Shown: positions 433 to 53,479 of the stretch, piece after piece | Layout: each line of letters opens with the position of its first letter | How positions within the stretch are numbered: the first letter of the stretch is position 1 | NCBI GenBank assembly: GCA_964035545.1 | Contig: OZ037766.1 | Span: forward strand, 11,708,722 to 11,772,721 | DNA length: 64,000 bases | From: Bugula neritina | Lineage: Eukaryota > Animalia > Bryozoa | Direction: 5' to 3' | Program-made: the position numbers and the translations under genes | Notes under the pieces: model-generated | Told to the model about the DNA's origin: nothing | The model's input: only the letters and a program-made list of their open reading frames with translations | Database searches by the model: none

Positions 433-7662
<7,230 letters not shown>

Positions 7663-9553: not shown

Positions 9554-12500
9554 TCACAAGGCAAATATGAGACATGAGTGAGATAAGATACCTTCACCAC
9601 CTGAAGCACCAGAAGCACCCGAGCTACCCTGAGTTGATTGACGGAGAGATGAATCTCCATCAACATGTTGAGAACTGTTTAAAGCCTGGTATGCATCAGT
9701 TTTGCTTAGATCTGTGTCAGCTACAACATGGGAAAGGCGTTTTAACATACAAAGTAGCATGCAATATCTTGCATATACAGTAATACAGTACTATAGTACA
9801 ATATAGCTGGTGCTGGTGGTAATAGAAGAAACAGAAAAATATTTTATGACATGCCAACAGAAAAAAGGGAACAAAATCGTGACATAACATATTAAGGTTA
9901 TAGGGTTATTATAATATTTATATAGAAAGAATGGTATGACTCATTACATTTTCTGACTTGTTTTAAAGCTGATGCTTCTTCTGTGACTTTAGAAACAGCT
10001 TGACTCCTCGGTCTGGAAGTGACTTGTGTGATCCTACCTATAGACAGTACAGACATTACATGCTACAAATGTCAAGGTCATTTTAGCATAGACTGCAGTT
10101 GTTACCTAAACCCTTAACTTTATGACTTCTGAGTTGTAGATTACTAACAGTACACAAACATACAACTATAACCAATAGCATACTCACAACTCTCCCATTC
10201 TTTCTGAATACAAAGAATTGCAACATATACTTCAGCTGAACTTGAATTGATAATTAGTCCAGCACTCGTTACCAATAGCAACGGTTCTGTCTTGCTAACT
10301 AATGCCAAAGGATTCAGAGTGATCGGATTACCTGGTACTGGACGAACAGAATTGCTGAAGAGAGAGTAACCTGTGCTGGACGGTTGGAGGATGGCATTAG
10401 CCTGTGTTGTTGTTAGGTCCAACATGTTAGCTATAACCATCATTTTTCTCTGAAAAAAAAACCATAATCATATTAAAATATGAGAGGAATAAAAAACAAT
10501 CTTTCAGAGGTCTAAGTCTCAGAACATTTTTGTTAATTCAAATGAATAACCAACATGTAGTAGGACTAGCGTGTGTTAGGTGTGTATTTCCACAAATTAA
10601 AACCCATAAAAAAAGCTATTTGAAAATTTAACCATTTGAAAGATGTATATGAAAAACATATGATGGTAGTCAAATTGGAAAAGAAAATCCTTTGCCTAAT
10701 ACAGATTTCTGTATATAGCACAGTTTCAAATTTTCTAGAAAATTGAAAAGTCTCAAAGTTGATGAAGTTCCTTTTATGTAGAAGCTGAGCTGTTTTACAA
10801 GAAGTCATAAAGTTAAAAGAAAATAAACACAAAATTAAAGAACCAAGACAATCCTGTTTCGAAAAAATTTAAAAGCTTTAAGACCTCACTAAAAATCATA
10901 GCACCTTTGCAAAATAGATACCTGGAACACACAAATGAATAAAAATGGTTTCTAAAATACCCATTATAAATTTCAGTCAATAAATTTCATTTTAGTAAAA
11001 ATGCGTTATAGTGAATTATTTAACTATTGACCATTCATGAACTGTCTTGCAGGGTAGTTCATGTGAGGAGTTTAATTTCTTTATAACAAGACTTATAAGT
11101 TTTCCGTTGGACCAAGTATCTTTTCAAAGACTAACAACACAAAAATAAAAAATTCAACAACTCTGAAACTGGTCTTAGATATGCATTTTTCTCAATAAAA
11201 AAATAATCAGTCATTTGCAAAATAATCACAAACGAAATACGCAATATGAAAAATTTGAAAAAACATTTTGGAATTTATTTCATAACCAACTAGCCGTTGA
11301 GATTTTTTGGGGATCTCTTAAAGCTACCATTGTGCCCATCAAATAGCTTTAGAAACATACTTGTCTAGCCTTAGTGCGACCTTTAGTCAGCCTTTGTTTA
11401 GCGGCAACACATCTAATGTGATCATCAAAGGTCAACTTAGCAGTGAGCAGAGGCAGTGGCTTAGCTAGATGGGAAGATGCAGGCTTGTGAATGTTGATAT
11501 GAAGAGATCTGCTATCATCTCGGTCTCCAGTGACCTCTACGTCCTGAATAGATTCACACAGAACACCAACATAAAAAGAGGTACGTGTAGACTATAATAT
11601 CCTAAACACTATCATTAAACCTGTTATAACTAGGAACCAGGGGTATTAGTCAGATTCGCACTGGACTGTAGTGTATATTCAGCTGAACAATCAACTTTCT
11701 AAATTATTAATGAGACTAGAGCCTTGTGTGCTGCACATTTGCACACACAACACTTCCAAAAGGGAATAAAATATCACAGGTAGAAAGAAATCAATGGTGT
11801 GCAAATTCTACACTTCAATTATGTATTACACAAGAGGCACAGCGCATCTGTTGATATAAATGTTTCCAGGAAATGATGTCATATCCAACAACACATCGTC
11901 AGCATACGGGCTACAACCGACTAAGGTAAACTAGTCAAACTAGACATGTAATTGTGGTAGACTGAAAACAACGTATCAACCTGCAAATATCCAGCAAATC
12001 GGACGACTCCCCACCCCAGACGCCCGGTCTCTGGCTCCACCATTATCAACTGTGTTATATCAATGACCAGAAACCGTCTTTCTTTTTTTGAAGATTTGCT
12101 AAAAAGAAAAAGTAGATAACTCTACACTGTAGTTCTTATCTAACATTGTAAGGTTGATTCTATCCTAATACATATTTCACACATATTATGAAGCATAAGA
12201 TATAAAAAATATTACAATATCGTAAAAGTTCTTGCTGCTTCATTCAAATGTAATTCTCAGTTAGTTAAAAATAACATGAATACTCAACTATGAGCATACC
12301 AACGGTATTATACAGCATACTTCTTTACTGCATAGATGTTGTAATGAGAAAATAATATTTTTAATCATAATTATGACCTTTGTATGTCTGAATATAATGT
12401 TGAAAAATGTAAAAATAACTACTTGGGTGAAATGAGAATGCAGGTGACATGCAAATAAGTCACGTATGGCAAGCAGGATTGTCAAGTATAACATCTTATA

Positions 12501-15500: not shown

Positions 15501-18500
15501 GTACCCCTTTCATTCCTCCTAGAGTTTCAAGTAGCCTTCTACATTTATACTTTATATTATAACATCAACATACACATAAACTGATAAATACTACATGTTA
15601 TTCAATGCATGTAACATTTCTAATAGACGAAGTGCCCTTTAAATTTCTTTAACGTCCAAGGGTGGGAATTTGAATAAACAGCCTGAAAGCAACATGAACG
15701 CAGGAGAAAAGTGAACTTCAAGCAGACAAAAAACTGCTATTATAGTCCTAGTTATTGCCAATGACTGCAGTGAAGACTCATAAATAGAGCAGAAATGCTG
15801 GAGGTATGTGCAAGTTGAGTGATTCTAGAAGGTGCTAGAATGTCTAACACTCATGTATAACGATCAAAGCCTGCATGTTCAGATGAGAGTCAAATCTAGT
15901 ATAATTACACATACATGAAACGCTGGTAGACACTTATTAGTGTTGACACTTGACTAGTATGAGTATACAAGTCTACATAGACACCAAGTCAATACAATAT
16001 AAGTCTTACAGAGTAGAGCATAAAACAATTGTCAGTCTTCTTTTACTCAAAAACAATATAGCAGACATGTTTGACTAACAATAAGACCAGTTTCACAGTC
16101 CTATATATACTAAACTGGTAGCCACACTTTTATCACTAGAACTCATTACATATGAAACAAATCAACCATGAATACTACATCAAAGTACAGTTATTTTAGA
16201 TAAATGAGTTACTCCTGTCAATAACTATAAATCTTTACATTGCATTAGGTTGGCGACAGAGTACATGAATTGCTATTACAACATTTAAAGCTTTATCAAA
16301 ATAATTACCAAGTTGGTAGTTCAAAACGTTATCTGAAATGTAAAAATACAGCCCATACTGCCATCTCAAATAGCTACTAATCATTCAACAATAAACACTA
16401 TAAATTTCCTACAATCAAAACCTTTTACTTTGTAAGAGTAAGTAGAAAACATTTCTACAGTATGTGGCAATTTTGTCTGCTTTTGTCTACTTTAAAAAAG
16501 GTTAAAAAGTAAATGTAATTTTATAAATTTTTGTATAAAGCTTGGCTGCAAAAGACTCACAAAATATACAGGATTACCTACCAGTGTTCTGTCCTATAGC
16601 ATAGAGAAGGCACAGAATTACCTACCAGTGTTCTGTCCTATAGCATAGAGAAGGCACAGAATTACCTACCAGTGTTCTGTCCTATAGTATAGAGAAGGCA
16701 CAGAATTACCTACCAGTGTTCTGTCCTATAGCATAGAGAAGGCACAGAATTACCTACCAGTGTTCTGTCCTATAGCATAGAGAAGGCACAGAATTACCTA
16801 CCAGTGTTCTGTCCTATAGCATAGAGAAGACACAGAATTACCTACCAGTGTTCTGTCCTATAGTATAGAGAAGGCACAGAATTACCTACCAGTGTTCTGT
16901 CCTATAGCATAGAGAAAACACAGAATTACCTACTAGTGTTCTGTCCTATAGTATAGAGAAGGCACAGAATTACCTACCAGTGTTTTGTCCTATAGCATAG
17001 AGAAGACACAGGGCTAACAAAGCACGGAAATCATCATCTACTGCATCCAGGCATTCCACTATTGCTTTTATATATGGCCTGTAACACAAAACCTGTACCT
17101 GTATATCTATATTAGACTACAGCATACTGTCCACAGAATTATATAGTTTATATTTACTGGCTACTCGAAGAGGTGTTTGTATTCTACTGGACAGTTTGTG
17201 CTTTGAAAGGTAGAAGGCCTCAATTCATGCAGATTTATTCATTTTGTTCAAAAAACAAGATTGAATTGCATATCTTCTAAACTAAACGTTTCCTCGCCAT
17301 ATATGGTACTTCATAGCCAAATAAACGTCTGAAAATCTCAGTTCCCTATTGACTTTCTATCTCATGATGTTTTAGAAAAAAACAGTTGAGTAGAAAGCAG
17401 TTATATTGCATAATGAATGTTTCGAAAACATCAGCGCGTTACAACAGAAACCCATACCTCTGAAGAAGAGAGAGTGATGACGCAGTGACTGAATCCTTGC
17501 TCAACTTCTCATCGTCGGTTGTGTTGGTTTGGGATTCGGCAAGACTAACTTCTGGGCTAGCAGATTCTAAAAACATAAAAACATATTCCATACACAATTA
17601 TTTCAACAGTTAAACAACAGAGTAGATGTAGGATTTGGTGACTCAACATTTAGATAGAGTCATGCAATATTATGCTAAGCAATAAATTCTACCAGGAATG
17701 ACTAGGATAACAGATAAGTGCTGTGAACTTGTGAGTGACCAGTTACAGTATACTATAATACATGTAGCGTATTGTAGTATACTGTAGTACATGCAGTATA
17801 CTGTGGTACACGCAGTGTGCTGTAGTATACTGTAGTACATGTAGTATACTGTTTACTGTAGTGTACTGTAGTGCATGTAGTATACTGTAGTATACTGTAG
17901 TATACTGTAGTTTACTGCAGTTCATGTAGTGTATCAAACTAACCTTGTTGATCCTCCAGCTGTTCCACAGGGGTACTCGCAAGGGCACTCACAGGGGTAC
18001 TCTCAGGGATACTCTCAGGGGCACTGGCCCTCCTCTCCAAGTGCCCAAACTCGTCCTTCAGTGAGACATTTGGTGCAATGAACTGTACAATGGTGGGGTG
18101 CAGAGCTGACTCCGTGCTGGAGAATGCACCAGTATTCCCTCTGGTGGGGCCAAGAAGAAGGGACATGAGCCGCCGCACCAGTGGCTGGTGGTGAATAATC
18201 AAGAAGACTTGGGACAGCAGGAACAGTGACACTGCTTCCGAGATTTGTGGAGCAGGTTTCTACAAGATAAGTTTCAGATATAAAACTCAACAGTCAGTAA
18301 AATGGTACTGCCACATATAACACAGTATATTCATACTATGTAAGTAAAAGTAAAGTCAATGAGCTGCATATATGATAGTCTTATAAGCACAAAACAAACA
18401 ACAGATGGTATACTACATGTACTACTACAGTACAATAGATGTGCTACAGTGCCTATTACAAATAGATTTCATTATTATCCTGTAGCCCACCAAAACTTCT

Positions 18501-42485: not shown

Positions 42486-43074
42486 AATAAGCTGAATAAT
42501 ATTTCACCCACTTATGCTAATTTTTTGTAGACAGATGCCGGTACAAATACACCGTGAATTTTTTTAAATCTCTCAACAGAATGTTGGTTGTTCTATGCAA
42601 CATGTATTGTTTTTCTCTTTCATAACTATCAAAATTAATTCCCAGCAAACACGACCTGCTCAAAAGATTCTGCATTGGGACATTTCTGCTGGTAGATTGC
42701 AAGGTTCCAGCACCCTTCCCAGCTAGCAAAATAGTTTATAGGAATATTGATTTTCTAGATAAATAAATAACGCAAGAAGCAAATTTTGATGCTTATATCT
42801 TCAACTTATCAACTTCTAGCTCTTGCTGTGCTCGAACATGTGAAACAATTTGTTGATTAATAAGTTCAATTTATTATAAGCTCATAAACATAGACAACGT
42901 ATTGCAATATTGGTAACAAAATAACAAAAAGAAAAAAACTTAATTTGATAATTCAAAATTATTTAATAAATAGTTCACATCCAGGAGCCAATCATTCATT
43001 GAATCTAAAATAGAATTATAACGCATACAGTTTCAGGATTATGTTGAACAGATTTGGTTTAACAGTATGAATGG

Positions 43075-43299
43075 ATTTGTATAAAGCATGGTTTTACCCA
43101 GTGGTCACAGCCACATAGTAGCTACACCAAGTTCAGGTATATGCTATACTCAGTCCACACCAGATACAAGTACCTGGGGACATGTTTTATCTGCGACAGT
43201 GTAGAGGGAAGCTGCACAGTGACTGACTTAATTAGTAGAACTAAACAGACAGACTAGTCAACACCACAGCTGGCGCCAATAGCCTAGCTGCTCTGTCAA
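43075..43299 (-). ncRNA. SNORA73: U17/snR30 (SNORA73)-family H/ACA snoRNA, copy 1, in predicted 3'-UTR intron of eIF3A
   Basis: ~225 nt. H box AGAUAA, m1-like GCAUAUACCUG, m2 AAACCAUGC, ACA 3 nt from the predicted end. Confidence 0.85.
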
Positions 43300-43831
43300 C
43301 ATCTAGCAGATCAATAAAGCAATAACAAAAAACTTCAATTTAAAGTTCAGATTGAAAATATGTTTGCATTTTTTCAAGTTATTTAAGGTATACACTGACC
43401 AGTTGAGACTAACAATTAAAACTGACCCAAAATTTATAGGTAGTATTTCTACTTGCGGAATTGTAGCTACTTGATGAAAACATGGGTATAGTTGGTATAT
43501 CATTTGAAAAATAAAAAGCTGCACTATTTGTAAGTTATTAAAAAAATTCAAAATTTTTTTACACAACCACCATTTTTGATAATGAAAAACAGGACACTGG
43601 CACATTTTTTAATTGAGAATTTCACAAACAAATTCAAACTGTTTTGATCGTTTCATTACACATTTTAGCGTCAATAACCTTAAGCAAAACAAAATATTAG
43701 CAGCTACAAGTTCATAAAATGGGAAGAAAATTCAGCCTGTACTACATAGTTAGTTGCCCATTACTAAATGAATGACAAGTGCTATCCCGGCTGATGAGAA
43801 AAACAAATGGATAACACGGACTCACCAACAA

Positions 43832-46800
43832 TTATTTTTTGTATCGGACTGTACTCCAACCATCTGCATCGTTTTGTGGAGGTTTATCTTCCTCCTGCCG
43901 CCTAGGTGGTGGGCCATCTCCTAGAAAAGTAAATTAAATATTTACACACAACATTTTCTGTATATAAAAAAACATTAATTAGCATTCAATTGTTTACTTG
44001 CAAAAAACCTAAAAATCTTAAGAGCAAAATCAACAGCGCAAATCGAGAGGACAATTGGACAATGGCCCACTTCTACAGTTATTATAGTGCAAGCTGGTAG
44101 GCAACACGAACCTCTACGCCAAGAGCTATCTCCCTTTTTAGTATCACGAGAGCCACTTCCTCGGGAAGGCAGTTCAATTCGCCGAGGCCCGCTTTCTCCT
44201 CGCCGCCATGAACTTTCACCTCTAAAAATGAAATGTTTCAACAAACAGTCAGAGATGCATCTACAGAGATCAGATCTATGGTTTGTATAAAGCATGGTTT
44301 TACCCAGTAGTCACAGCCACATAGTAGCTACACCAAGTTTAGGTATATGCTATACTCAGTCCACACCAGATACAAGTACCCGGGGACATGTTTTATCTTT
44401 GACAGTGTAGAGGGAAGCTGCACAGTGACTGCCTGAATTAGTAGAACTAAACAGACAGACTAGTCAACACCACTAACTACCACAGCTGGCGCCAATAGCC
44501 TAACTGCTCTGTCAGCATTAGAATGTAAAGCACCCAACCGCATCAAAAGCAAAGCTTACCCTCTGGTATCCTGGCCAAAGCCTCGATCGTCTGATCGACG
44601 GTTTGAGTCATCAGCACCACGGGTCCATCTGTCATCCCCACCGCGTCTTTCAAAACGATTGCTATCTCCACGTCTCTCAAATCTATCACTGTCACCACGC
44701 CTTTCAAATCCGCCATCTCGCCTGTCATATCCATCTTTGCGACCACCATCCCTAGACCATGGCTCATCTCTTCGTCCACCGCCATCTCTAAACCTGTCCC
44801 TAGGTGGTTCGTCTCTAAGCCTGTCCCTTGGTGGTTCGTCTCTGAACCTGTCCCTCGGTGGTTCGTCTCTAAGCCTGTCCCTAGGTGGCTCATCTCTGAA
44901 TCTGTCCCTAGGTGGCTCATCTCTGTAACGATCCCTGGACTCCTCACCATCGTCACTATAACAAAAACAACAGTAGTTATGGCACAGAAACAAACACAGA
45001 TGGATTTGTATAAAGCATGGTTTTACCCAGTAGTCACAGCCACATAGTAGCTACACCAAGTTTAGGTATATGCTATACTCAGTCCACACCAGATACAAGT
45101 ACCTGGGGACATGTTTTATCTTTGACAGTGTAGAGGGAAGCTGCACAGTGACTGACTGAATTAGTAGCACTAATCAGACAGACTAGTCAACACCACTAAC
45201 TACCACAGCTGGCGCCAATAGCCTAGCTGCTCTGTCAACATCAACAAGTGGCAGAAGTCTTCATACATGCTCCTGAAACTTCAGGTAAACAGAGATTTTT
45301 CTTCTATAACGAGTTTTGAAAACATCAGAAAAATATTAAATTGGCCACATGATTCGTGTAATAATTTATTTAGCACAACAGGACTTTTTCAAAACCACAA
45401 GGAAAGGAAATAACAAAGTATGTATTAGCTTACCCTTTCTTTTTCCAGGAATCTTTTTTAGCAGCTTCTCGCTCTCTCCAGCCACCGCTGCCTCCAGTTC
45501 CCCCGACACGATATGCACCAGAAGAGGGCGCTGCTGATTGACGAGCTTGTTTCTCTTCAATTTCCAACTCGCGCTGTCTCTGCTTGGCAGCGATGGCCTC
45601 AAGCTTAGCCAGTCTTTCTTCTTCCATTTTTTGTTTCTGTTCCATTTCTTCTTTTTCTCGGGCTATTCTTTCTTCTCGTTCTGTAAAAATAAATGTTTAA
45701 GTTTTGAGTTACCTCAGCAAGACAATGTAACAAATCACTAAATACAGGCACTGCTATATGTTTGCATACTTCTTTGCACATTGCTGTAAAGCTAAGTGCA
45801 CTTATTCTGATACACTTTCATTTAGGCATCTCGTAATATCAAAAGCTATTAGTTAATTTTTGATATAATTGTAACAAAATGCCTGTAACTTATGACCAGA
45901 AAAAACCACTGCAAAATGGAATCACACAAGATGCAACTAACCTCTTCTTGCAGCTTCATCACGTTCGCGCTGTCGACGCTCTTCTCTTGCAGCAATGGCT
46001 TTTACTCTTCTGTCTTCCTTTCTAGCAGCCCGACGTTCTTCTAAGCGCTCCGCCTTGACTTTAGCCAACATTGCATTGTACTCCTTCATCTTGGACTTTA
46101 AAAAATGAACAGAATGTTGATATTTAAAATATGCAATAAACATAAACCATCAATTACAGCCATTACATAAAGATAGAAGATTTGTATAAAGCATGGTTTT
46201 ACCCAGTGGTCACAACCACATAGTAGCTACACCAAGTTTAGGTATATGCTATACTCAGTCCACACCAGATACAAGTACCTGGGGACATGTTTTATCTTTG
46301 ACAGTGTAGAGGGAAGCTGCACAGTGACTGACTGAATTAGTAGAACTGATCAGACAGACTAGTCAACACCACTAACTACCACAGCTGGCGCCAATAGCCT
46401 AACTGCTCTGTCAATAAAAAGCAACAAGACTGGCCAACTTCTTTCAGATCCACCACAAGTTAGCTAGGCTTACCTCATGGCCGTCACGCCTCGAGTCCTT
46501 CAATCTCCCAATAAACTCATCTTTATCCGCCTGCATCTTTTTGAGTCTGTCACGATGTTTTAAAGCCAGTTCTCGTTCCTTTTTCAGTCCTTCAATCTAC
46601 ACACAGAAACCCCAGAATAGCTATAGACGGACCCGAGCATACCGAATGTATCATAGCTGTGAAATCAACGCAGGTCATAACTTGATAGTCATCATAACTC
46701 TATGAATGTGAACAGCAAATATTTATAATCACACCTAATAAACCGGCAAAGAAATATAGCAGCAGACTTCCTTACCCTATCTTTTTCTAGCTGCTCCCAC

Positions 46801-49800
46801 TGCTCTCGCTTCTGAGCACCCATTACCCTCGCATGCTCCTCCAGGAGGGGAATTTCTTCAAGTCTCTTGGCACGAATGAAGTGGTCAACCTAAACACACA
46901 GTTCAAACAATCTACATGTAGTATGCATTACAAGGTCCAATGTAAACAAGCTTGAAGAACAACAAAACTTCAGACAGCCAGGGATGGCAGATTTTCGTGA
47001 CACAGTGCACCACACCAGGGGGTTCATCCATTTCTGGTCCTAGTGATTTGTGCAAGCAGCCGAGAAATATAATTTCATCACATAGTTTTGAAAACATTGG
47101 CTCCAGCACACCAAAAAGCTACTTAGAGGCGTACCTTTTTATCCTGGCTCTTCAATCGCTCTTGCAGCTCTCTTTTCTCTTTTTCTAACTGCTCCACTTG
47201 CTTTTTGAGGATGTCATCTGTGTCTAACTCAGCCAGTTCCTGGAAACGGGCACAAGATACAATAGGAAACGAAGCTACTTCCAACAGGATTAGCACACTG
47301 AATGTAACTTGTCAATTGAACCATGACACCAAAATTTGTCACAATACATCAATCAACTAGAATAGTTATGTAGCATGAAATGAAAACTGCAACAGGGATA
47401 ATGTACCCAGCACAGTCAACCAAACTCCATGCTTTGCCATACCAGATATAAGAGGCCAAAATACTTACCTCTTCAGTCAGCCCTTCAAGAGCCCGTATTC
47501 CGATATCTGTTGTCTTTAGCTGCTCGATACGCTTCTCTGCCTCCTTCTTTCGGATGTTTTCGTGCTCTTGTTGCGCACGCTGTCGTTCACGTTCAGCCAT
47601 TTCTCGCTTGAGGCGGGTTTCTTCTTTTTCCCTCAAAATACGTTGCTTTGTTCTTTCTTTTTCCAATTCCATTTCATCCTAGATAAGAAATTACACAAAC
47701 ACGGTTGACACTTGGAAATAAAGTGCCATGGTTGGAAATTGTTTCAATATGGAAACTTGTCAGTGCCATTTCTTTACAAACCATATTAACACAGCCTGCA
47801 CTTTGTTTGGACACCGTTTTTTTAGGCTCGGTTTGACACCCAGAATGTGTGTGTACAACATACCAGCAACACCCAAGCCAATCAAAAGAACTGATCTAAT
47901 ACTTCAAGAATGATGGTTTACAGTAGTCACAAAACTTATATTACTTTAACGTATATCTAAATACCTTTTCACGATTGATTATTTCCAGCTTTTCCTTCCT
48001 GTTTTCTATGACATTCTTTCGTGTTAAAATCTTTTGCCTGTCTCGCTTTTCTGATTTTCGATAGGCATCAATAATCTTGGCCTTCGTATCCAAATTCGTA
48101 GCCTATGAAAATACAATTATTCCCATGAAAAGCTCTGGAAAAGAACATAAACGAAGAAATTCAATAATATTAGTTTGTCTGGAGTGGCACTGTTACCTTA
48201 TCAGCTTGGTCTGCCTGAAGCTTAGTGATGGCATTGGACAGAGCGCGTGCCATATGCTGTAGCTGGTTACGCAACTGTTCACCTGGCATATGCTGCAAGA
48301 ATGGACCTTCCTCTACATCTTCTTGAAGGCACACATTAAGGTCAGTACCAAAACTCACACTTTGAGTTCTATGATCCAGTCTGATCTGCAAAAAGTTGCA
48401 CCATACTATACGCAGGTTTAAAAGAACTGACATCAATGTAATCATTACTGTTAGTTGTAAGATGCATTTGATATGAGCTGAAAAAAATCTGCCCTCAAAT
48501 AAAAAATACATCAATTTGTATCGGCTCTGTTTGACACCCAGTAAGTCTTAAGAACAGACCAGCAACAGTCAAAGCCTAGGCAAACAAAAGTAAGTCCTAG
48601 ATTAATACTTACAGGTAAATCAATATTCTTAGCAGCTTGTGCAATAATTCTCTCCAGCTCAAATGCTGAAACAAATGGGACGAGCTCACGAAGTCTCTCG
48701 AACTGTATAGACTGGTAGATTTGTGCAACCTGAAAAAAGCAACTTTAAGTTAACACAAATAGACGGTGTGAGGCAATGAATTAAATGTATGTGTAAGTTC
48801 AGTACGAAGCTCTCACAACAAAGCCATTGTGAAGGCCAGAAATGAACTGCTGCTTTTGCCTTGTGCAACACTCTAAAATAACATTAAAGTAGATTTGTTG
48901 TTACACCAAGGCTTAGAATGCGAGAAATTCAAGTTAATAAAACACCTGCTTAATGAGTCGGACAACCATCATCTCCTGCAGAGAGTCTACATAGTGACAG
49001 AGGTCATTTGACTGCTCTAGAAACTTGAGACAGGGTGTTAGCTTGGTTGATAACTTGAGAGGGGAGAATTCAACTTCTAAGCTGTTATAGAGATCCCTCA
49101 GCTCAGGCGAGATGTGTTGCAGAACATTACTCTTAATCTACAACATGAAATATACCGTAACAGGAACACCATTTTACCAAATACATTTTTACCCAAACAG
49201 AGAGTACAGCGTGAGATTGCAGGGTGTGAGATTGCAACAGTGAGTGCTACTAAATTGATTAGTAAGCACCAATAAAACAAGCAAACTATTGTTATAAGCC
49301 CATACAGTTACCACCATAAACATACATTTTTGGTGGTCGTAGATGGGCTATTTGTTAGTGTAACATTAATATATAACACATTCTTACCAGATCTTTGACT
49401 AGAGAAGCTCTAGTGGGTGGAGTGGGCACAGATGCTAGACTGAGGAGGGAAGCTAAGCGACGTCTTTTCTCAGCATCGTTAGATTCTAACAGCTGGTCAA
49501 TCAGGTATCTTGTAGGTGGAATGGGGATGGACAATGTCGAACATAGAACACGGTTGGCAATCCTACAATGAGAGGCGAGATTGTCAGAGCACTTTATACC
49601 CAATAAAGAATTGATTCTTAACTGAGCTCAAACAGGCCCGATTGGTCTAGCACTAGTAAGATAGGAAAGCAATATACTGTATTACGTATATACTCGCTGG
49701 ATAGTGCATCACATCGACACAAGTGAGCAACACTCTTATTACCTCGTTATTTCTTCTGGACTTGGGTTTTTCTTCTGTTCAGAGATGAGAAGGAAGAGGC

Positions 49801-51731
49801 GGTGGCACGCAGCTGCATGGAACAAATGGTTGCCAGACTTCAGAAACACAAGGCTAACATTTTCAAAGTAACTGGCCAATGATGAAGGCTTCGGCACTTT
49901 CTTCGACCTCACAATAAGGTCATGTATATCTTCAACAGCTTTAAAGGCTTCCTATATAAAAGAACAGGCACTAGATCCATCTCTGTACTTGCGTTTTTAT
50001 CAATTTCAAAAACATTATTGCAGTTGATCAGCAGCAAGAAATAGACTGGTTACCTGCCACAGCTCCATACCAATTGCCGAATCTAATTGGTTCAGGCGAG
50101 TATCAAGGTGCATGCTCAGACTTTCTGCATTGTTGAGGGAAACAGCATTCTGCTGTGTGTGAACTTTCTCAATTATCTGCTTCAAGTGATTTCGAAGCTG
50201 AAAAATGAACATAATTTTTAGGATAGAAGTAGAGATGGCTTTTCTTATTTGACCAGAAAGGAGAGAATTTCAGACAGCCGGAGATGGCAGATTTTCGTGA
50301 CACAGAACACCACACTAGGGGGTTCTTCCATTTCTGGTCCTAGTGATTTGTGCAAGCAGTCGACACTAGATTATTCATCATTAATTCTAAAGACTGGCAA
50401 CAGTTGCAGGAAAATTTAAACAAAGGTAAATATAAAACTACAGTATTCTTACATTATCACACAACTTTCTGAACTCGGTCTTCCTTGAATAGGTAGAGCA
50501 AAAGTCAAATGCTTGTTTAGCAATGTCATGGTAAAGACGTTCAACTCGGTTGTTGTTTCGAAGCAGATCTAAGCATTGCCTAAATGACTCCCAGAGAAAC
50601 TTGACCCAAGGTGTGAGTATGGCCCGATCCGATCTATCTTGAGCATCTTCAGCAGTCACAGCCGCAAGCAATAAGCTAAACAAAATACAACACATTTGTT
50701 GTTGGTGGTGACTTTAAAGAGCAAGTAACTTTGTTTATAGTTAGCCTAAAAGATGTAATTGATATTAAAACTATTTGCACACTAATGCAAATAAAAAAAA
50801 ACATCAAGCATTAATCTTGCACTTTTAATAATGGTAATCACCGATCGATACAATCAATAACCCCTCCGAAAGTGCTCATTAAATCATTGAAAACAGATTA
50901 TAAATATGTATGTCAAGAGACCTTTCAGGGGATTGAATGACGTCCAGATCATCAATGTCTAGGCACGATTGGTGAGATTGCTCCCGGGCAGCTTCAGTTT
51001 TTTGAGATGCCAAATTCAGATAAAATCTAATAACTGTATCAAGTGACTTTACATTCACCTGAAAGCAAGACATCAATTGCAATTTGAATTAGTAACACAA
51101 AATAAAAATTTACAGATCTTTAAGCCATAAAAATGGGCTTTCAATATAAATGCTGCCAAAAACTTACCAGCTGGCATATATTTTTGTATTGATATAAACC
51201 TTCTTTAGCAAGGTGACTTTTCTTCAGTTCTACACACAGCTCCAAGTACTTCAACATAATAGGTTCGTGGGTTTTCTGCCATGTTCGGTGCCTTTTACTT
51301 TTAATAACATCATACAGAACTTCAAGAGCTTGCTCTGGTTTTGACACCTCAATAAATTCTAAAATAAAAATAGAATATTATTTCTAACTTACGATAACTT
51401 CATACAATATTTTGTGAAATTCATTTAAAGGAAACTTTTTATATGGTTCTGCAAGCCAATTTAAAACTAAAACTTTGAAATTACTATTAGTAGTAGTATT
51501 AGTACTAAAAGTAAATGCAATTAAAATATCAATATACTAACAATAGACGACACTAACTATTTCTACTAATACTAGTACTACAACATCAACTCTGAGTCTA
51601 AGCGACTAACATTAACATTTAATTACAATAAATTATAATAACAGCAACATCAACGCGAGTTTAATTCTACAAAATTACATACCACTAGCCCGTTTTAAGG
51701 CATTTTCCGGCTTTTGAAAGTACGTTGGCAT
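43832..51731 (-). CDS. EIF3A: Eukaryotic translation initiation factor 3 subunit A, ~20 coding exons
   Basis: [15 protein letters not shown]|EFIEV.K...[42 protein letters not shown], a coiled-coil region and C-terminal RD-rich repeats. Stop TAA at 43832-43834. Confidence 0.97.
44281..44514 (-). ncRNA. SNORA73: U17/snR30-family snoRNA, copy 2
   Basis: Near-identical intronic copy. m1-like AUAUACCUA, m2 AAACCAU, ACA box. Confidence 0.85.
44788..44935 (-). repeat. Coding 27-bp tandem repeat (RDEPPRDR[F/L]) x5 in the eIF3A C-terminus
   Basis: Seen in the translation of ORF 44556..44993. Confidence 0.9.
45004..45238 (-). ncRNA. SNORA73: U17/snR30-family snoRNA, copy 3
   Basis: As copy 2. Confidence 0.85.
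45756..45885 (-). ncRNA. Candidate H/ACA snoRNA, target not identified
   Basis: Hairpin aggcattttgt..acgagatgcct, H box AAAUGA, second hairpin, ACA box, ~130 nt. Confidence 0.55.
46180..46414 (-). ncRNA. SNORA73: U17/snR30-family snoRNA, copy 4
   Basis: As copy 2. Confidence 0.85.
46963..47090 (-). ncRNA. SNORD22: U22 (SNORD22)-like box C/D snoRNA, copy 1
   Basis: C box GUGAUGA, 3' CUGUCUGA, 7-bp terminal stem caaaact/agttttg. Central CUAGGACCAGA..GAUGAACCCCCUGG resembles the recalled U22 core. Confidence 0.75.
47300..47433 (-). ncRNA. Candidate H/ACA snoRNA, target not identified
   Basis: Hairpin agcatgga..ttcatgct with internal loop, H box ACAUAA, second hairpin, ACA box. Confidence 0.6.
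47755..47880 (-). ncRNA. SNORA13: SNORA13/snR35-like H/ACA guide for the 18S m1acp3-Psi site, copy 1
   Basis: 5' pocket GUGUU/GUCAAA is complementary to 18S UUUGAC-U-C-AACAC, 14 nt from the H box. Second hairpin ends in ACA. Confidence 0.75.
48453..48578 (-). ncRNA. SNORA13: SNORA13/snR35-like H/ACA guide, copy 2
   Basis: Same pocket UGUU/GUCAAA, H box AUACAA at 14 nt, unrelated second hairpin, ACA box. Confidence 0.7.
48789..48913 (-). ncRNA. H/ACA snoRNA with SNORA2/SNORA34-type 28S target
   Basis: H box AAAGCA. 3' pocket UCUG/UUCGUAC is complementary to 28S GUACGAA-U-A-CAGA. ACA box present. Confidence 0.65.
49222..49350 (-). ncRNA. Candidate H/ACA snoRNA, target not identified
   Basis: agcccat-ctacg-accacca..tggtggt-aactgt-atgggct hairpin with clear pocket, H box AUAACA, second hairpin, ACA box. 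Confidence 0.65.
49579..49708 (-). ncRNA. Candidate H/ACA snoRNA, target not identified
   Basis: gcacta..tagtgc hairpin, H box AGACCA, second hairpin with gctcagt/attgggt upper stem, ACA box. Confidence 0.6.
50264..50388 (-). ncRNA. SNORD22: U22 (SNORD22)-like box C/D snoRNA, copy 2
   Basis: Paralog of 46963-47090. C box AUGAUGA, D box CUGA, different terminal stem agaatt/aattct. Confidence 0.75.
50751..50876 (-). ncRNA. Candidate H/ACA snoRNA with possible 28S target
   Basis: gcacttt..aaagtgc hairpin, H box AGAUUA, second hairpin ttgatgtt..aatatcaa, ACA box. Confidence 0.6.
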
Positions 51732-51800
51732 GATTCTAGAGTTGGTTATGGCGCCTGCTATAGAACGAAAATGAAGTCCTACTTTCCCGGCCAAAAGCTA

Positions 51801-51825
51801 GGGAAAGAAAGGAAGCTTACACGTG
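51801..51825 (-). promoter_or_regulatory. Putative TCT/5'TOP initiator of eIF3A with adjacent E-box
   Basis: Minus strand cttcctttctttccc ~70 nt upstream of the ATG; CACGTG at 51820-51825. Confidence 0.55.
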
Positions 51826-53479
51826 AGACCTCGCGTACAAAACGATAGAAAATTGTTTAGCCGCAAATAGATATTTCAATAAAATGCGAAAATTTTAATT
51901 ATTTTTTTATTTAGTGTTTGTAAATAATATTTTGATTAACAAAGGGTATTTAAAAATTTAAGTGATCAACTATCAACATTGAGCCTTTCAATGATGCTAT
52001 CATTATAGAGAGCTTCTACAGCTAAATTAATATTGGTGAACAATAAAGAAGTTCGCCAAGGAGAAGGCAAATCTCTTCAAATGGAATTGCATTATTATTT
52101 CCACATAACTTATTCGCTTCTGTAGTACAGTTTGTAGTTATGCAAACCCACAAAAACAGAGCCATATTCATTTAATTAGGTTTCAAGTCCTACAACATCA
52201 TCGGAGGATGTTGTTACATATTATATTATTTATAAATTATATAGATGTGGTGCTGTGCTATACAACTTCAAATTGCTAAGCTTGTCCTAGTTTACAGATT
52301 AATGCTATTATATTTCATTTGAGAACTAGAGTTGTGTAACTAGTAAGAGTGTAGTATATCTGATTTGAATAAGCTCTACACGTCTATATTTACTGTTTGA
52401 GGAATGAGTTTTTATGCAGCTAGATACAGTTACGTTGAAATGAGCATACTATATTTTATTTAATGACACTGATGACAGTGATTTTAAATTTAAAGTCCAT
52501 CAAATACTATTAGTAAGTCATCAGTAAGTTTCAAGATTTGTCCACCCCCCTTATATCAGTGTAATGCTAAATAGATGGATATCACTAACTTATATACAAA
52601 GATTGATTGCTAATATTTTTGCATTGCATCCCACATATGTACGAAAGTCAGTTATTCCTTCTAGACTTTTGATATACCTAAAGAAGCTGTTATATGAATC
52701 TCAGAGTATTATTGCAAGAACATTAGTTGACTACTTCTCCTCTCTGTGATGATGAGATACTATGGTCATGGACATATATATAGCCATGGACAGTATTGGT
52801 TGTAGATCTCTTAAGTTTAAATCATTTTAATATTTTTAGGCATTCAAGACTAGAGGCAAATTCACCAGTAAATATATGCAAATAAGTAGTCATATTATCC
52901 CTAATATAAAATCCAGTTACATTCTAATAATATTATTACTGAGTCGATCATCATTTTTGATGAACTTTTAACTTTAATTTGAAGTTGTCCTCCCTTGGAA
53001 ACTTTTCCTAATGTTTATTAGAAGGTTTGCCAGTTGATGCCAGGCTCGTTCAAAATTTCATAAATATATAAGTGTTTACAAGTTACTGACTTTCTCTGAT
53101 CACAATTTTTAATATAATTATTTTTATATGTGTTTGAATATGCACATGGAATGCAAATAACACTTATATGTTATATATGTTGATGCTGGACAATATGTAT
53201 AAAATTATTTTTACAGTCTATAAAAAACAAACCTATTATCCTTCATATGTATATTTTATATTCAAAATGAAATTATTTATGTTACAAAGTTAGAAATTTT
53301 ATTTGTAATGGCATTGATATTCTATATAATAATCAAATAATATATCTATTAGTAAATATTGTTAATTATTTATGAACCTTTTGCACAGGGTATATCGTCT
53401 TCGCTCATGTGCTCAAGCTGCTTGTGGAAACCAGATATATATTATTTTTAAATTATTATTAAAAGAAAATCACACAAGT

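Follow-up and report, generated by a model that had tools for sequence, protein, structure and literature searches.

Several described systems in which small nucleolar RNAs (snoRNAs) are carried by introns resemble the locus analysed here, the eIF3a gene of Bugula neritina, which lies on the minus strand of a 64,000-nucleotide (nt) stretch of contig OZ037766.1 (positions 11,708,722 to 11,772,721; hereafter the window). In the Xenopus S8/U17 system (1994, 1996, as cited in PMC7601244), several near-identical U17 copies are found one per intron, in sense orientation, in a strongly expressed protein-coding gene that belongs to the translation apparatus, and are released from the spliced introns. 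Human U17HG (SNHG3, upstream of RCC1) also bears intronic U17 (U17a and U17b) in a host of the terminal oligopyrimidine (TOP) type, the snoRNA being conserved and the host not. Initiation-factor genes are hosts as well, since human EIF3A contains SNORA19 and EIF4A2 is a mixed multi-snoRNA host (SNORA81, SNORA4, SNORA63, SNORA63B and SNORD2; PMC8759569).

The bryozoan locus differs from each of these systems. Compared with Xenopus, the host is eIF3a and not a ribosomal-protein gene, U17 occupies four of the 20 introns with other families elsewhere, and the U17 m1 motif carries a lineage-specific change. The human U17 host is non-coding and has two copies, whereas the host here encodes an essential protein. 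Human EIF3A hosts one snoRNA, SNORA19 (PMC8759569), against about 12 of about eight families here, and vertebrate U17 resides in other hosts (PMC7601244), which bears out what a preliminary description of this DNA had stated for human. We consider that eIF3a is very probably an ordinary protein-coding housekeeping gene, probably of the TOP type, which doubles as a multi-snoRNA host. It hosts about 12 well-supported intronic snoRNAs and is thus a dense case of a known gene layout, which reveals no new mechanism.

The gene model was built from reading frame and GT..AG rules on positions 42900-52000 and comprises the following features:

43832 to 51731, minus strand: eIF3a coding region, 20 exons, 19 coding introns and 1103 codons in a frame-consistent GT..AG model
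43005 to 43825, minus strand: intron 20, in the 3' untranslated region (3'UTR), GT..AG, 821 nt, with its donor 6 nt past the stop codon

The start ATG is at 51731 and the stop codon at 43834-43832, a single terminal stop in a coding sequence of 3312 nt. All introns are GT..AG and range from 94 to 821 nt overall (94-478 nt for the coding introns), 17 of them being at least 170 nt long. The N-terminus and exon 4 unmistakably identify the gene. Exons 4 and 10 were used separately as search queries; exon 4 matched eIF3a proteins and exon-sized open reading frames (ORFs) at 72-95% identity, with the Pfam domain eIF3a_PCI_TPR-like on the matches, and its search retrieved full-length eIF3a from shrimp, monkey, fish, ascidian and mite, mostly transcript-derived and taxonomically uninformative. 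Spliced contigs of four RNA-type runs, aligned to 43000-48999, contain the exact joints of introns 8-18 (CT..AC ends). For intron 19 they give only a near-by joint with replaced letters, an approximate confirmation, and for intron 20 the support consists of loose contig ends at 43826 (runs X2 and X14) that run on into the exon starting at 43004. Under the usual 50-nt rule, a 3'UTR intron 6 nt past the stop codon should not trigger nonsense-mediated decay. RNA contigs bearing the same coded organism label as the likely source of the assembly (runs X2, X8 and X12) diverge from window positions 43000-48999 by 3-9% in the exons, with one 3-nt indel in exon 18, as if one name covered separate strains or a cryptic species.

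Twelve elements are supported within this gene, namely four U17, two SNORA13-like, two box C/D, one SNORA9-like and three other H/ACA RNAs (introns 7, 8 and 12). Every one lies on the sense strand and there is one per intron; 12 of the 17 introns of at least 170 nt therefore carry a well-supported element. The family calls rest on Rfam E-value scans, below gathering scores. In the order of transcription the elements are:

50264 to 50388, minus strand: C/D copy a, intron 4, 125 nt, stem AGAATT/AATTCT, C box aTGATGA, D box CTGA
49579 to 49710, minus strand: SNORA9-like RNA, intron 6, RF00411 at 44.7 bits, E 6e-7, full length, cut-off of 85 not reached
49222 to 49352, minus strand: H/ACA candidate of intron 7, two hairpins, H box ATAACA, ACA, single copy in the genome
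48789 to 48912, minus strand: H/ACA candidate of intron 8, H box AAAGCA, ACA, single copy in the genome
48453 to 48576, minus strand: SNORA13-like a, intron 9, RF00396 at 27 bits, E 0.15, cut-off of 53 not reached
47755 to 47882, minus strand: SNORA13-like b, intron 11, snopsi18S-1377 at 23.6 bits, E 0.47
47300 to 47433, minus strand: H/ACA candidate of intron 12, H box ACATAA, ACA probably at 47305-47303, single copy in the genome
46963 to 47090, minus strand: C/D copy b, intron 13, 128 nt, stem CAAAACT/AGTTTTG, C box TGATGA, D box CTGA
46180 to 46414, minus strand: U17 copy 1, intron 15, RF00045 at 60.7 bits, E 3e-13
45004 to 45238, minus strand: U17 copy 2, intron 17, RF00045 at 67.3 bits, E 5e-15
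44281 to 44515, minus strand: U17 copy 3, intron 18, RF00045 at 63.7 bits
43075 to 43299, minus strand: U17 copy 4, 3'UTR intron 20, RF00045 at 55.6 bits, somewhat degenerate

The E-value scan gave four full-length SNORA73 matches (E 9e-12 to 5e-15) and one SNORA9 match (E 6e-7). When the 64-kb window was scanned as a whole, every Rfam snoRNA match with E<1 fell in eIF3a, where SNORA13 appeared at E 1.8; outside the gene the scan returned a single snoRNA match, snoZ223 at E 1.8, the remainder being AT-rich hairpin "miRNA" matches. This snoZ223 (C/D) match, at 17331-17423 on the minus strand in another gene, has CTGATGT and CTGA motifs and is unconvincing. A strict H/ACA scan, in which an ACA, an ANANNA hinge and two single hairpins at -12 kcal/mol or lower were required, found hits in six of the 20 sense introns (3, 6, 7, 8, 9 and 11), in one of the 20 antisense introns and in five of 214 control segments of the window. 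The snoRNA density in the eIF3a introns exceeds chance. Control hits at 3001 and 12001 (minus strand) turned out on inspection to be a (TA)n repeat and an AT-rich fold. A long (TA)n/AT-rich palindromic repeat at 3097-3285 gives a spurious Pestivirus 3'UTR match as well as a false H/ACA candidate.

Genome-wide, U17 is present in exactly four copies and the C/D RNA in exactly two, all within eIF3a, and the four other elements searched are single copy; no further U17 was detected in the 216-Mb assembly by covariance model or BLAST. No snoRNA element was found in introns 1, 2, 5 and 10 or in the upstream parts of introns 17 and 20. A candidate in intron 19 ("cand-19") was rejected, its identity to the close relative L038 (see below) being 78.7% against 78.3% for the flanks. 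Considering these results together, the dense host with about 14 intronic snoRNAs of the preliminary description is upheld for 12 elements, with introns 3, 14 and 16 as possible further hosts and intron 19 removed. Its four U17-like RNAs (RF00045 at 55.6-67.3 bits, E 9e-12 to 5e-15) and two SNORA13-like RNAs, both with a pocket fitting 18S U1228, stand, as does its remark that nothing comparable occurs in the introns of the other genes; the genome-wide transposon copies that it had named as a refutation were not seen for any searched element beyond eIF3a. Its SNORA2/34-like RNA is not recovered, as the Rfam scan gave no SNORA19, SNORA2 or SNORA34 match at E<=10 in any eIF3a intron; the intron 8 RNA may be the one meant. 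The SNORA9-like RNA of intron 6 resembles a family that it had not named.

Related loci were collected by exon-sized searches. The closest, L038, shows about 91% identity and is collinear with the window gene from exon 6 onwards to its end; L040 (L035 is the same species) contains the whole gene with exons 65-78% identical, L039 covers exons 7-17 and L036 exons 3-4. Between the window and L038, the elements are 91-97% identical, the rest of the introns 75-90% and the exons 93.5%. Element and rest-of-intron identities are 97.4% and 80.0% for U17 copy 2 (p=1e-9), 96.0% and 75.5% for U17 copy 1 (p=3e-7), 96.9% and 84.0% for SNORA13-like b (p=4e-4), 93.8% and 77.4% for C/D b (p=6e-4), 94.4% and 76.3% for the intron 8 RNA (p=6e-4, guide strands unchanged), 91.6% and 75.6% for the intron 7 RNA (p=0.001) and 95.3% and 85.5% for the intron 12 RNA (p=0.02). 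The SNORA9-like RNA has 96.2% against 87.5% with few flank bases, and the difference for SNORA13-like a (91.1% against 85.7%) is not significant. For the unnamed H/ACA RNAs of introns 7, 8 and 12, identity above the rest of the intron is the pattern of purifying selection. The H and ACA boxes are unchanged in L038, except for the ACA first called in intron 12, which reads ACT there, an ACA 7 nt downstream being conserved; substitutions are commoner at unpaired than at paired positions.

The more distant relatives also carry snoRNAs in eIF3a. In L040 there is a C/D RNA in intron 4, a SNORA9-like RNA in intron 5, U17 in both intron 15 and intron 17, where the window has copies 1 and 2, and a SNORA13-like RNA in intron 16. 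L039 has a SNORA9-like RNA in intron 8 and, in intron 10, an RNA that corresponds to the intron 12 RNA and has identical guide strands, and L036 has a SNORA13-like RNA upstream of exon 3. The comparison of eIF3a introns across related genomes, which the preliminary description had suggested, thus finds the cargo kept in distant relatives, so that the association is old and the intron positions are fluid. L040 is without introns 11 and 13, exons 11/12 and 13/14 being contiguous (L040:10271-10612 and 10782-11000); as the window has SNORA13-like b and C/D b in just these two introns, gain or loss of introns went with snoRNA copy number. About 5 kb downstream of eIF3a, L040 also has a tRNA gene (17748-17830, minus strand, 65 bits) among neurotransmitter-gated-channel-like ORFs.

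U17/snR30 is needed for the processing of 18S ribosomal RNA (rRNA; cleavages A0, A1 and A2). The four copies found here align over the full length of RF00045 (1-219) at 55.6-67.3 bits against a gathering score of 74, that is below the curated cut-off and far past chance, and are 93-98% identical to each other. When they are aligned with their flanks, similarity extends from TTGACAGAGCAG to the ACA plus 3 nt, and the flanks are unrelated; as the similarity stops at the ends of the RNA itself, it bears the signature of intronic snoRNA gene copies and not of segmental repeats. Copy 2 has its H box, AGATAA, at 118 and its ACA at 230-232 of 235 nt, 3 nt before the end, an m1 motif reading AUAUACCUA and an exact m2 motif, AAACCAU. 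Copy 4 has a 10-nt deletion, lower-stem mismatches and a G after m1, is conserved in L038 no better than its flanks and may be decaying; a 267-nt RNA contig of "organism B" spans it at 43076-43317.

In the consensus U17, m1 (AUAUUCCUA, AUAUUCC) and m2 (AAACCAU) lie on the two opposite strands of the internal loop within the 3' hairpin (PMC7601244) and pair with rm1 and rm2 in expansion segment 6 (ES6) of 18S (PMC7601244, PMC2664660), rm1 being GGAAU in other eukaryotes (PMC2664660). In the present U17, m1 is AUAUACC (AUAUACCUA), with U5 of the consensus replaced by A. In the 18S of this genome (L007:610-2459), GGUAU occurs once, at 834-838, in the ES6 stretch GCAUGGUAUGAUGG, with UGGUU at 868-872, and GGAAU is absent from the rm1 region of ES6; rm1 was placed by the sequence around it, partly by reference to 18S sequences from elsewhere. 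The U-to-A change of m1 and the A-to-U change of rm1 (GGAAU to GGUAU) thus form a matched compensating change between U17 and 18S. The U17 copies of the distant relative L040 also carry AUAUACC. In the published table of animal and fungal U17/snR30, m1 varies only at its last position (PMC7601244), and we did not find tabulated for animals a compensated change such as these sequences suggest. The closest parallel is snR30 of Trypanosoma brucei, in which an altered m1 is compensated in 18S rm1 (PMC2664660); here a single position is changed, and in an animal lineage. The rDNA unit at L007 (G000:C6:7112500-7122499) measures about 13.4 kb, with a first internal transcribed spacer (ITS1) that is unusually long at about 2 kb. 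At its 3' end the 18S is atypical (GGTTTTCGTAGG...CTGCGTAAGGATCATTG), and at least 12 copies of 18S occur, in both orientations, on two contigs.

Both SNORA13-like RNAs show the hairpin-hinge-hairpin-ACA arrangement. A SNORA13 pocket, set 14-16 nt from the H box, is expected to pair with UUUGAC-U-C-AACAC to either side of the helix-31 uridine, and such a pocket is found in both paralogs. In SNORA13-like a, the 5' pocket TGTT/GTCAAA pairs with 18S TTTGAC-U1228-C-AACA through 6+4 Watson-Crick pairs, 14 nt from the H box; in SNORA13-like b, GTGTT/GTCAAA forms 6+5 Watson-Crick pairs at 18S U1228 at a distance of 14. We take this U1228 to be the hypermodified uridine of helix 31, the m1acp3-pseudouridine site. 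The match is meaningful despite a noisy predictor because the site was pre-specified by the family. GTCAAAC and TGTTGCTGG are invariant in six SNORA13-like sequences from four genomes, and the 5' hairpin of SNORA13-like a is identical in L038. The lower stem shows compensating changes: U-A becomes G-C from one paralog to the other, and in L040 U-A becomes C-G, as read directly off a MAFFT alignment that is not structure-aware. RNAs of this type were seen only in eIF3a, no genome-wide search able to find diverged copies having been run.

The two box C/D RNAs, with (a/g)TGATGA as C box, have a 98-nt core that is 92% identical, enclosed by terminal stems (6 and 7 bp) that differ in sequence and retain pairing in each copy; the ortholog in intron 4 of L035/L040 has a third stem, AGCA/UGCU, around the core GAACCCACUGG. 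Copy a lies 66 nt and copy b 73 nt upstream of the 3' splice site. Hirose and Steitz reportedly found in 2001 that such a distance favours the processing of C/D snoRNAs in mammals. With the most permissive filters, SNORD22 (RF00099) is the best Rfam family for copy a, with a full-length match at 16.2 bits (E 1.1; the cut-off is 50), and the L035 ortholog scores 16.5 bits (E 6.5); copy b has no SNORD22 match. A duplex search against the 5' external transcribed spacer, 18S, ITS, 5.8S and 28S gave energies and longest runs like those of shuffled sequences, with no site in common; the longest complementarity, 12-15 nt with 2-7 G-U pairs, is likewise within shuffles and is not common to the three sequences.

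As in vertebrate U22, the C/D RNA is unusually long (about 125 nt) and without convincing rRNA antisense, and it has in common with U22 a GAACCC(A/C)CU core and CUGUCUGA at the D box. Vertebrate U22, for which a processing role is listed (PMC4914119), is hosted by the non-coding UHG/SNHG1 (Tycowski et al. 1994, cited in PMC7038934), whereas the host here is protein-coding with two copies of the candidate RNA, and the scores are 16 bits against the cut-off of 50. The lack of rRNA antisense fits a non-guide RNA such as U22 and proves nothing, and the C/D RNA may be U22 without this identity being proven. Of the two U22-like RNAs in the preliminary description, both C/D RNAs are present and the U22 name, at 16 bits against 50, is not secured.

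Among the remaining H/ACA RNAs, the SNORA9-like RNA has full-length orthologs at 54.6 bits in intron 5 of L035/L040 and at 53.3 bits in intron 8 of L039, and the strands of its pockets, AUCCAGCG/UUUCCUA and UGUUUGAG/GUAUAAAG, fall on conserved columns of the consensus. SNORA9 is listed as guiding 28S, at helices 37 and 38a (PMC12288042); a 3+6 bp match of the present RNA to 28S UAU-U1197-C-UCAAAC is no better than those to shuffles. The RNAs of introns 7, 8 and 12 have the class layout of hairpin, ANANNA hinge, hairpin and ACA in about 125-135 nt, the architecture of the intron 12 RNA having been seen on inspection and outside the hits of the strict scan. The 3' pocket of the intron 8 RNA would form 13 Watson-Crick pairs with the conserved 28S CAGUACGAA-UA-CAGA around U3109. 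The 5' pocket of the intron 12 RNA, kept in L039, would pair with 28S GAAA-UU-CAACCAAGC around U2566, and the 3' pocket of SNORA13-like b, kept in L036, fits 28S U2012. Stricter target geometry missed even the SNORA13 pocket, and the evidence on targets was limited to the pre-specified SNORA13 site and to guide strands kept across species.

Just upstream of the 5' untranslated region, one further feature concerns the expression of the host:

51795 to 51830, minus strand: putative TOP-like start region, with an E-box (CACGTG) and, not more than about 10 nt after it, the pyrimidine tract CTTCCTTTCTTTCCC

In a 5'TOP, transcription starts at a C and pyrimidines follow without interruption. Here CTTCCTTTCTTTCCC is located some 80 nt upstream of the eIF3a ATG, and L040 (L040:6930-6975) has TCACGTGT and a downstream pyrimidine run upstream of exon 1, with the E-box (T)CACGTG(T); the pair of E-box and pyrimidines is thus kept between two species whose eIF3a exons are about 75% identical. 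The region looks like a putative TOP start with a Myc/USF-type site, in agreement with the preliminary description, which had noted that snoRNA hosts are often TOP genes.

Three further introns are possible hosts:

50751 to 50875, minus strand: possible H/ACA element of intron 3, weak, architecture only, 5' hairpin without a pocket
46597 to 46775, minus strand: conserved element of intron 14, 91.8% identical to L038
45681 to 45941, minus strand: intron 16, evenly conserved, 93.8% against L038, good 5' hairpin followed by AAATGA

Intron 3 is 75 nt long in L040, and no counterpart of its element was found in L036. In intron 14 neither an H box nor a CUGA D box was found, and Rfam gave no match; in the window and L040 it has in common an exact 14-mer TGCTGTTCACATTC, GTGATTAT and a TGATGA motif, with CTGA about 70 nt downstream in L040 where the window has CTAT. 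Intron 16 contains no clean 3' hairpin or ACA and is an incomplete H/ACA.

The model that we favour for this host follows the described systems. Each long eIF3a intron would release one snoRNA after splicing and debranching, exonucleases trimming the intron down to the snoRNP core formed with dyskerin and the H/ACA proteins or with fibrillarin and the C/D proteins. The cargo is mixed: U17, with three copies in good state and one that may be decaying, would act as an 18S-processing chaperone that pairs with ES6 through m1 and m2; the two SNORA13-like RNAs would guide modification of the 18S helix-31 uridine; the long C/D RNA without rRNA antisense may be a counterpart of U22; and several RNAs would be ordinary pseudouridylation guides, at least three of them likely acting on 28S at tentative targets. 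Across the clade the snoRNAs have stayed with eIF3a, with individual members duplicated, lost or shifted from one intron to another. The parts of this model that we infer are the maturation to stable RNAs, what the unnamed H/ACA RNAs target, regulation of the TOP type and any benefit of co-expression with eIF3a.

Several observations weigh against the model. At Rfam gathering thresholds the window has zero matches; the covariance check proposed in the preliminary description therefore gives E-value matches to SNORA73 and SNORA9 and weak ones to SNORA13, and none at gathering score. Introns 14 and 16 are conserved yet do not fit the snoRNA model. Prediction of H/ACA targets gave 143 sites on rRNA against 120 on shuffled decoys, then 14 against 11; because real and decoy counts are so similar, the targets other than the pre-specified SNORA13 site are tentative. 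The RNA runs are assembled contigs, which are unable to show mature ends or abundance. Finally, the TOP status is putative, the start region having been read from the sequence.

Three other readings were weighed. In the first, eIF3a would be the sole and ancient source, in a clade that is probably that of bugulid bryozoans, of the snoRNAs on which 18S production depends (U17, a true U22 ortholog and the helix-31 guide), and U17 and 18S would have co-evolved at m1/rm1. We regard this full combination as unlikely; if true, small-subunit assembly would be tied to the transcription of one initiation-factor gene.

Slightly less likely still, in our view, is the interpretation of the preliminary description, according to which the lineage selectively gathered 40S-biogenesis snoRNAs (U17, U22 and SNORA13) into eIF3a, one transcript adaptively coupling the supply of eIF3a to small-subunit maturation. 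All detectable U17 is indeed in eIF3a, the SNORA13-like RNAs were seen only there (with the limit on diverged copies given above), both families act on 18S, and the association is conserved in relatives. The C/D RNA is moreover of U22-like size, lacks rRNA antisense and has SNORD22 as its best family in two species. By copy number, eight of the 12 elements would be small-subunit-related. This share, however, comes mainly from the amplification of U17; by family it is two or three of about eight, and the U22 identity is unproven, at 16 bits against 50. SNORA9 counts among the listed 28S guides (PMC12288042), and for the RNAs of introns 8 and 12 the top predicted targets are 28S sites that are conserved; such predictions, though tentative, argue against an exclusive small-subunit theme, and the 40S-specific enrichment was accordingly not retained. 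The host of U17 also varies by lineage, from a ribosomal-protein gene in frog and fish to a non-coding TOP gene in mammals (PMC7601244), which fits neutral host switching among highly expressed genes, and co-transcription is generic to every intronic snoRNA.

That the elements are dispersed repeats, retroposed snoRNA pseudogenes or conserved splicing structures, and not functional snoRNA genes, is very improbable: the degenerate U17 copy 4, no more conserved than its flanks, and introns 14 and 16, conserved without snoRNA boxes, would agree with it, but the searched elements have no copies outside eIF3a, all lie on the sense strand with one per intron, their boxes and guide strands are conserved where flanks diverge, changes in stems are compensated, and orthologs in other introns of distant relatives point to mobile RNA genes and not to splice elements.

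The locus, read as a housekeeping gene that doubles as a multi-snoRNA host, provides a clean and well-delimited set of snoRNAs, including the only U17 detectable in the genome, for a phylum with almost no annotation of non-coding RNA. The points worth keeping are the conserved and exclusive hosting of U17 by eIF3a in the clade, intron switching, the m1/rm1 change and the candidate U22. A snoRNA set can keep one host while its members switch introns: across three genomes the SNORA9-like RNA occupies intron 6, 5 or 8, and the places of the SNORA13-like RNAs are introns 9 and 11, intron 16, or a position upstream of exon 3. The C/D pair is a candidate invertebrate U22, in a family known mainly from vertebrates, and the natural compensatory pair formed by U17 m1 and 18S rm1 bears on the recognition of ES6 by snR30/U17.

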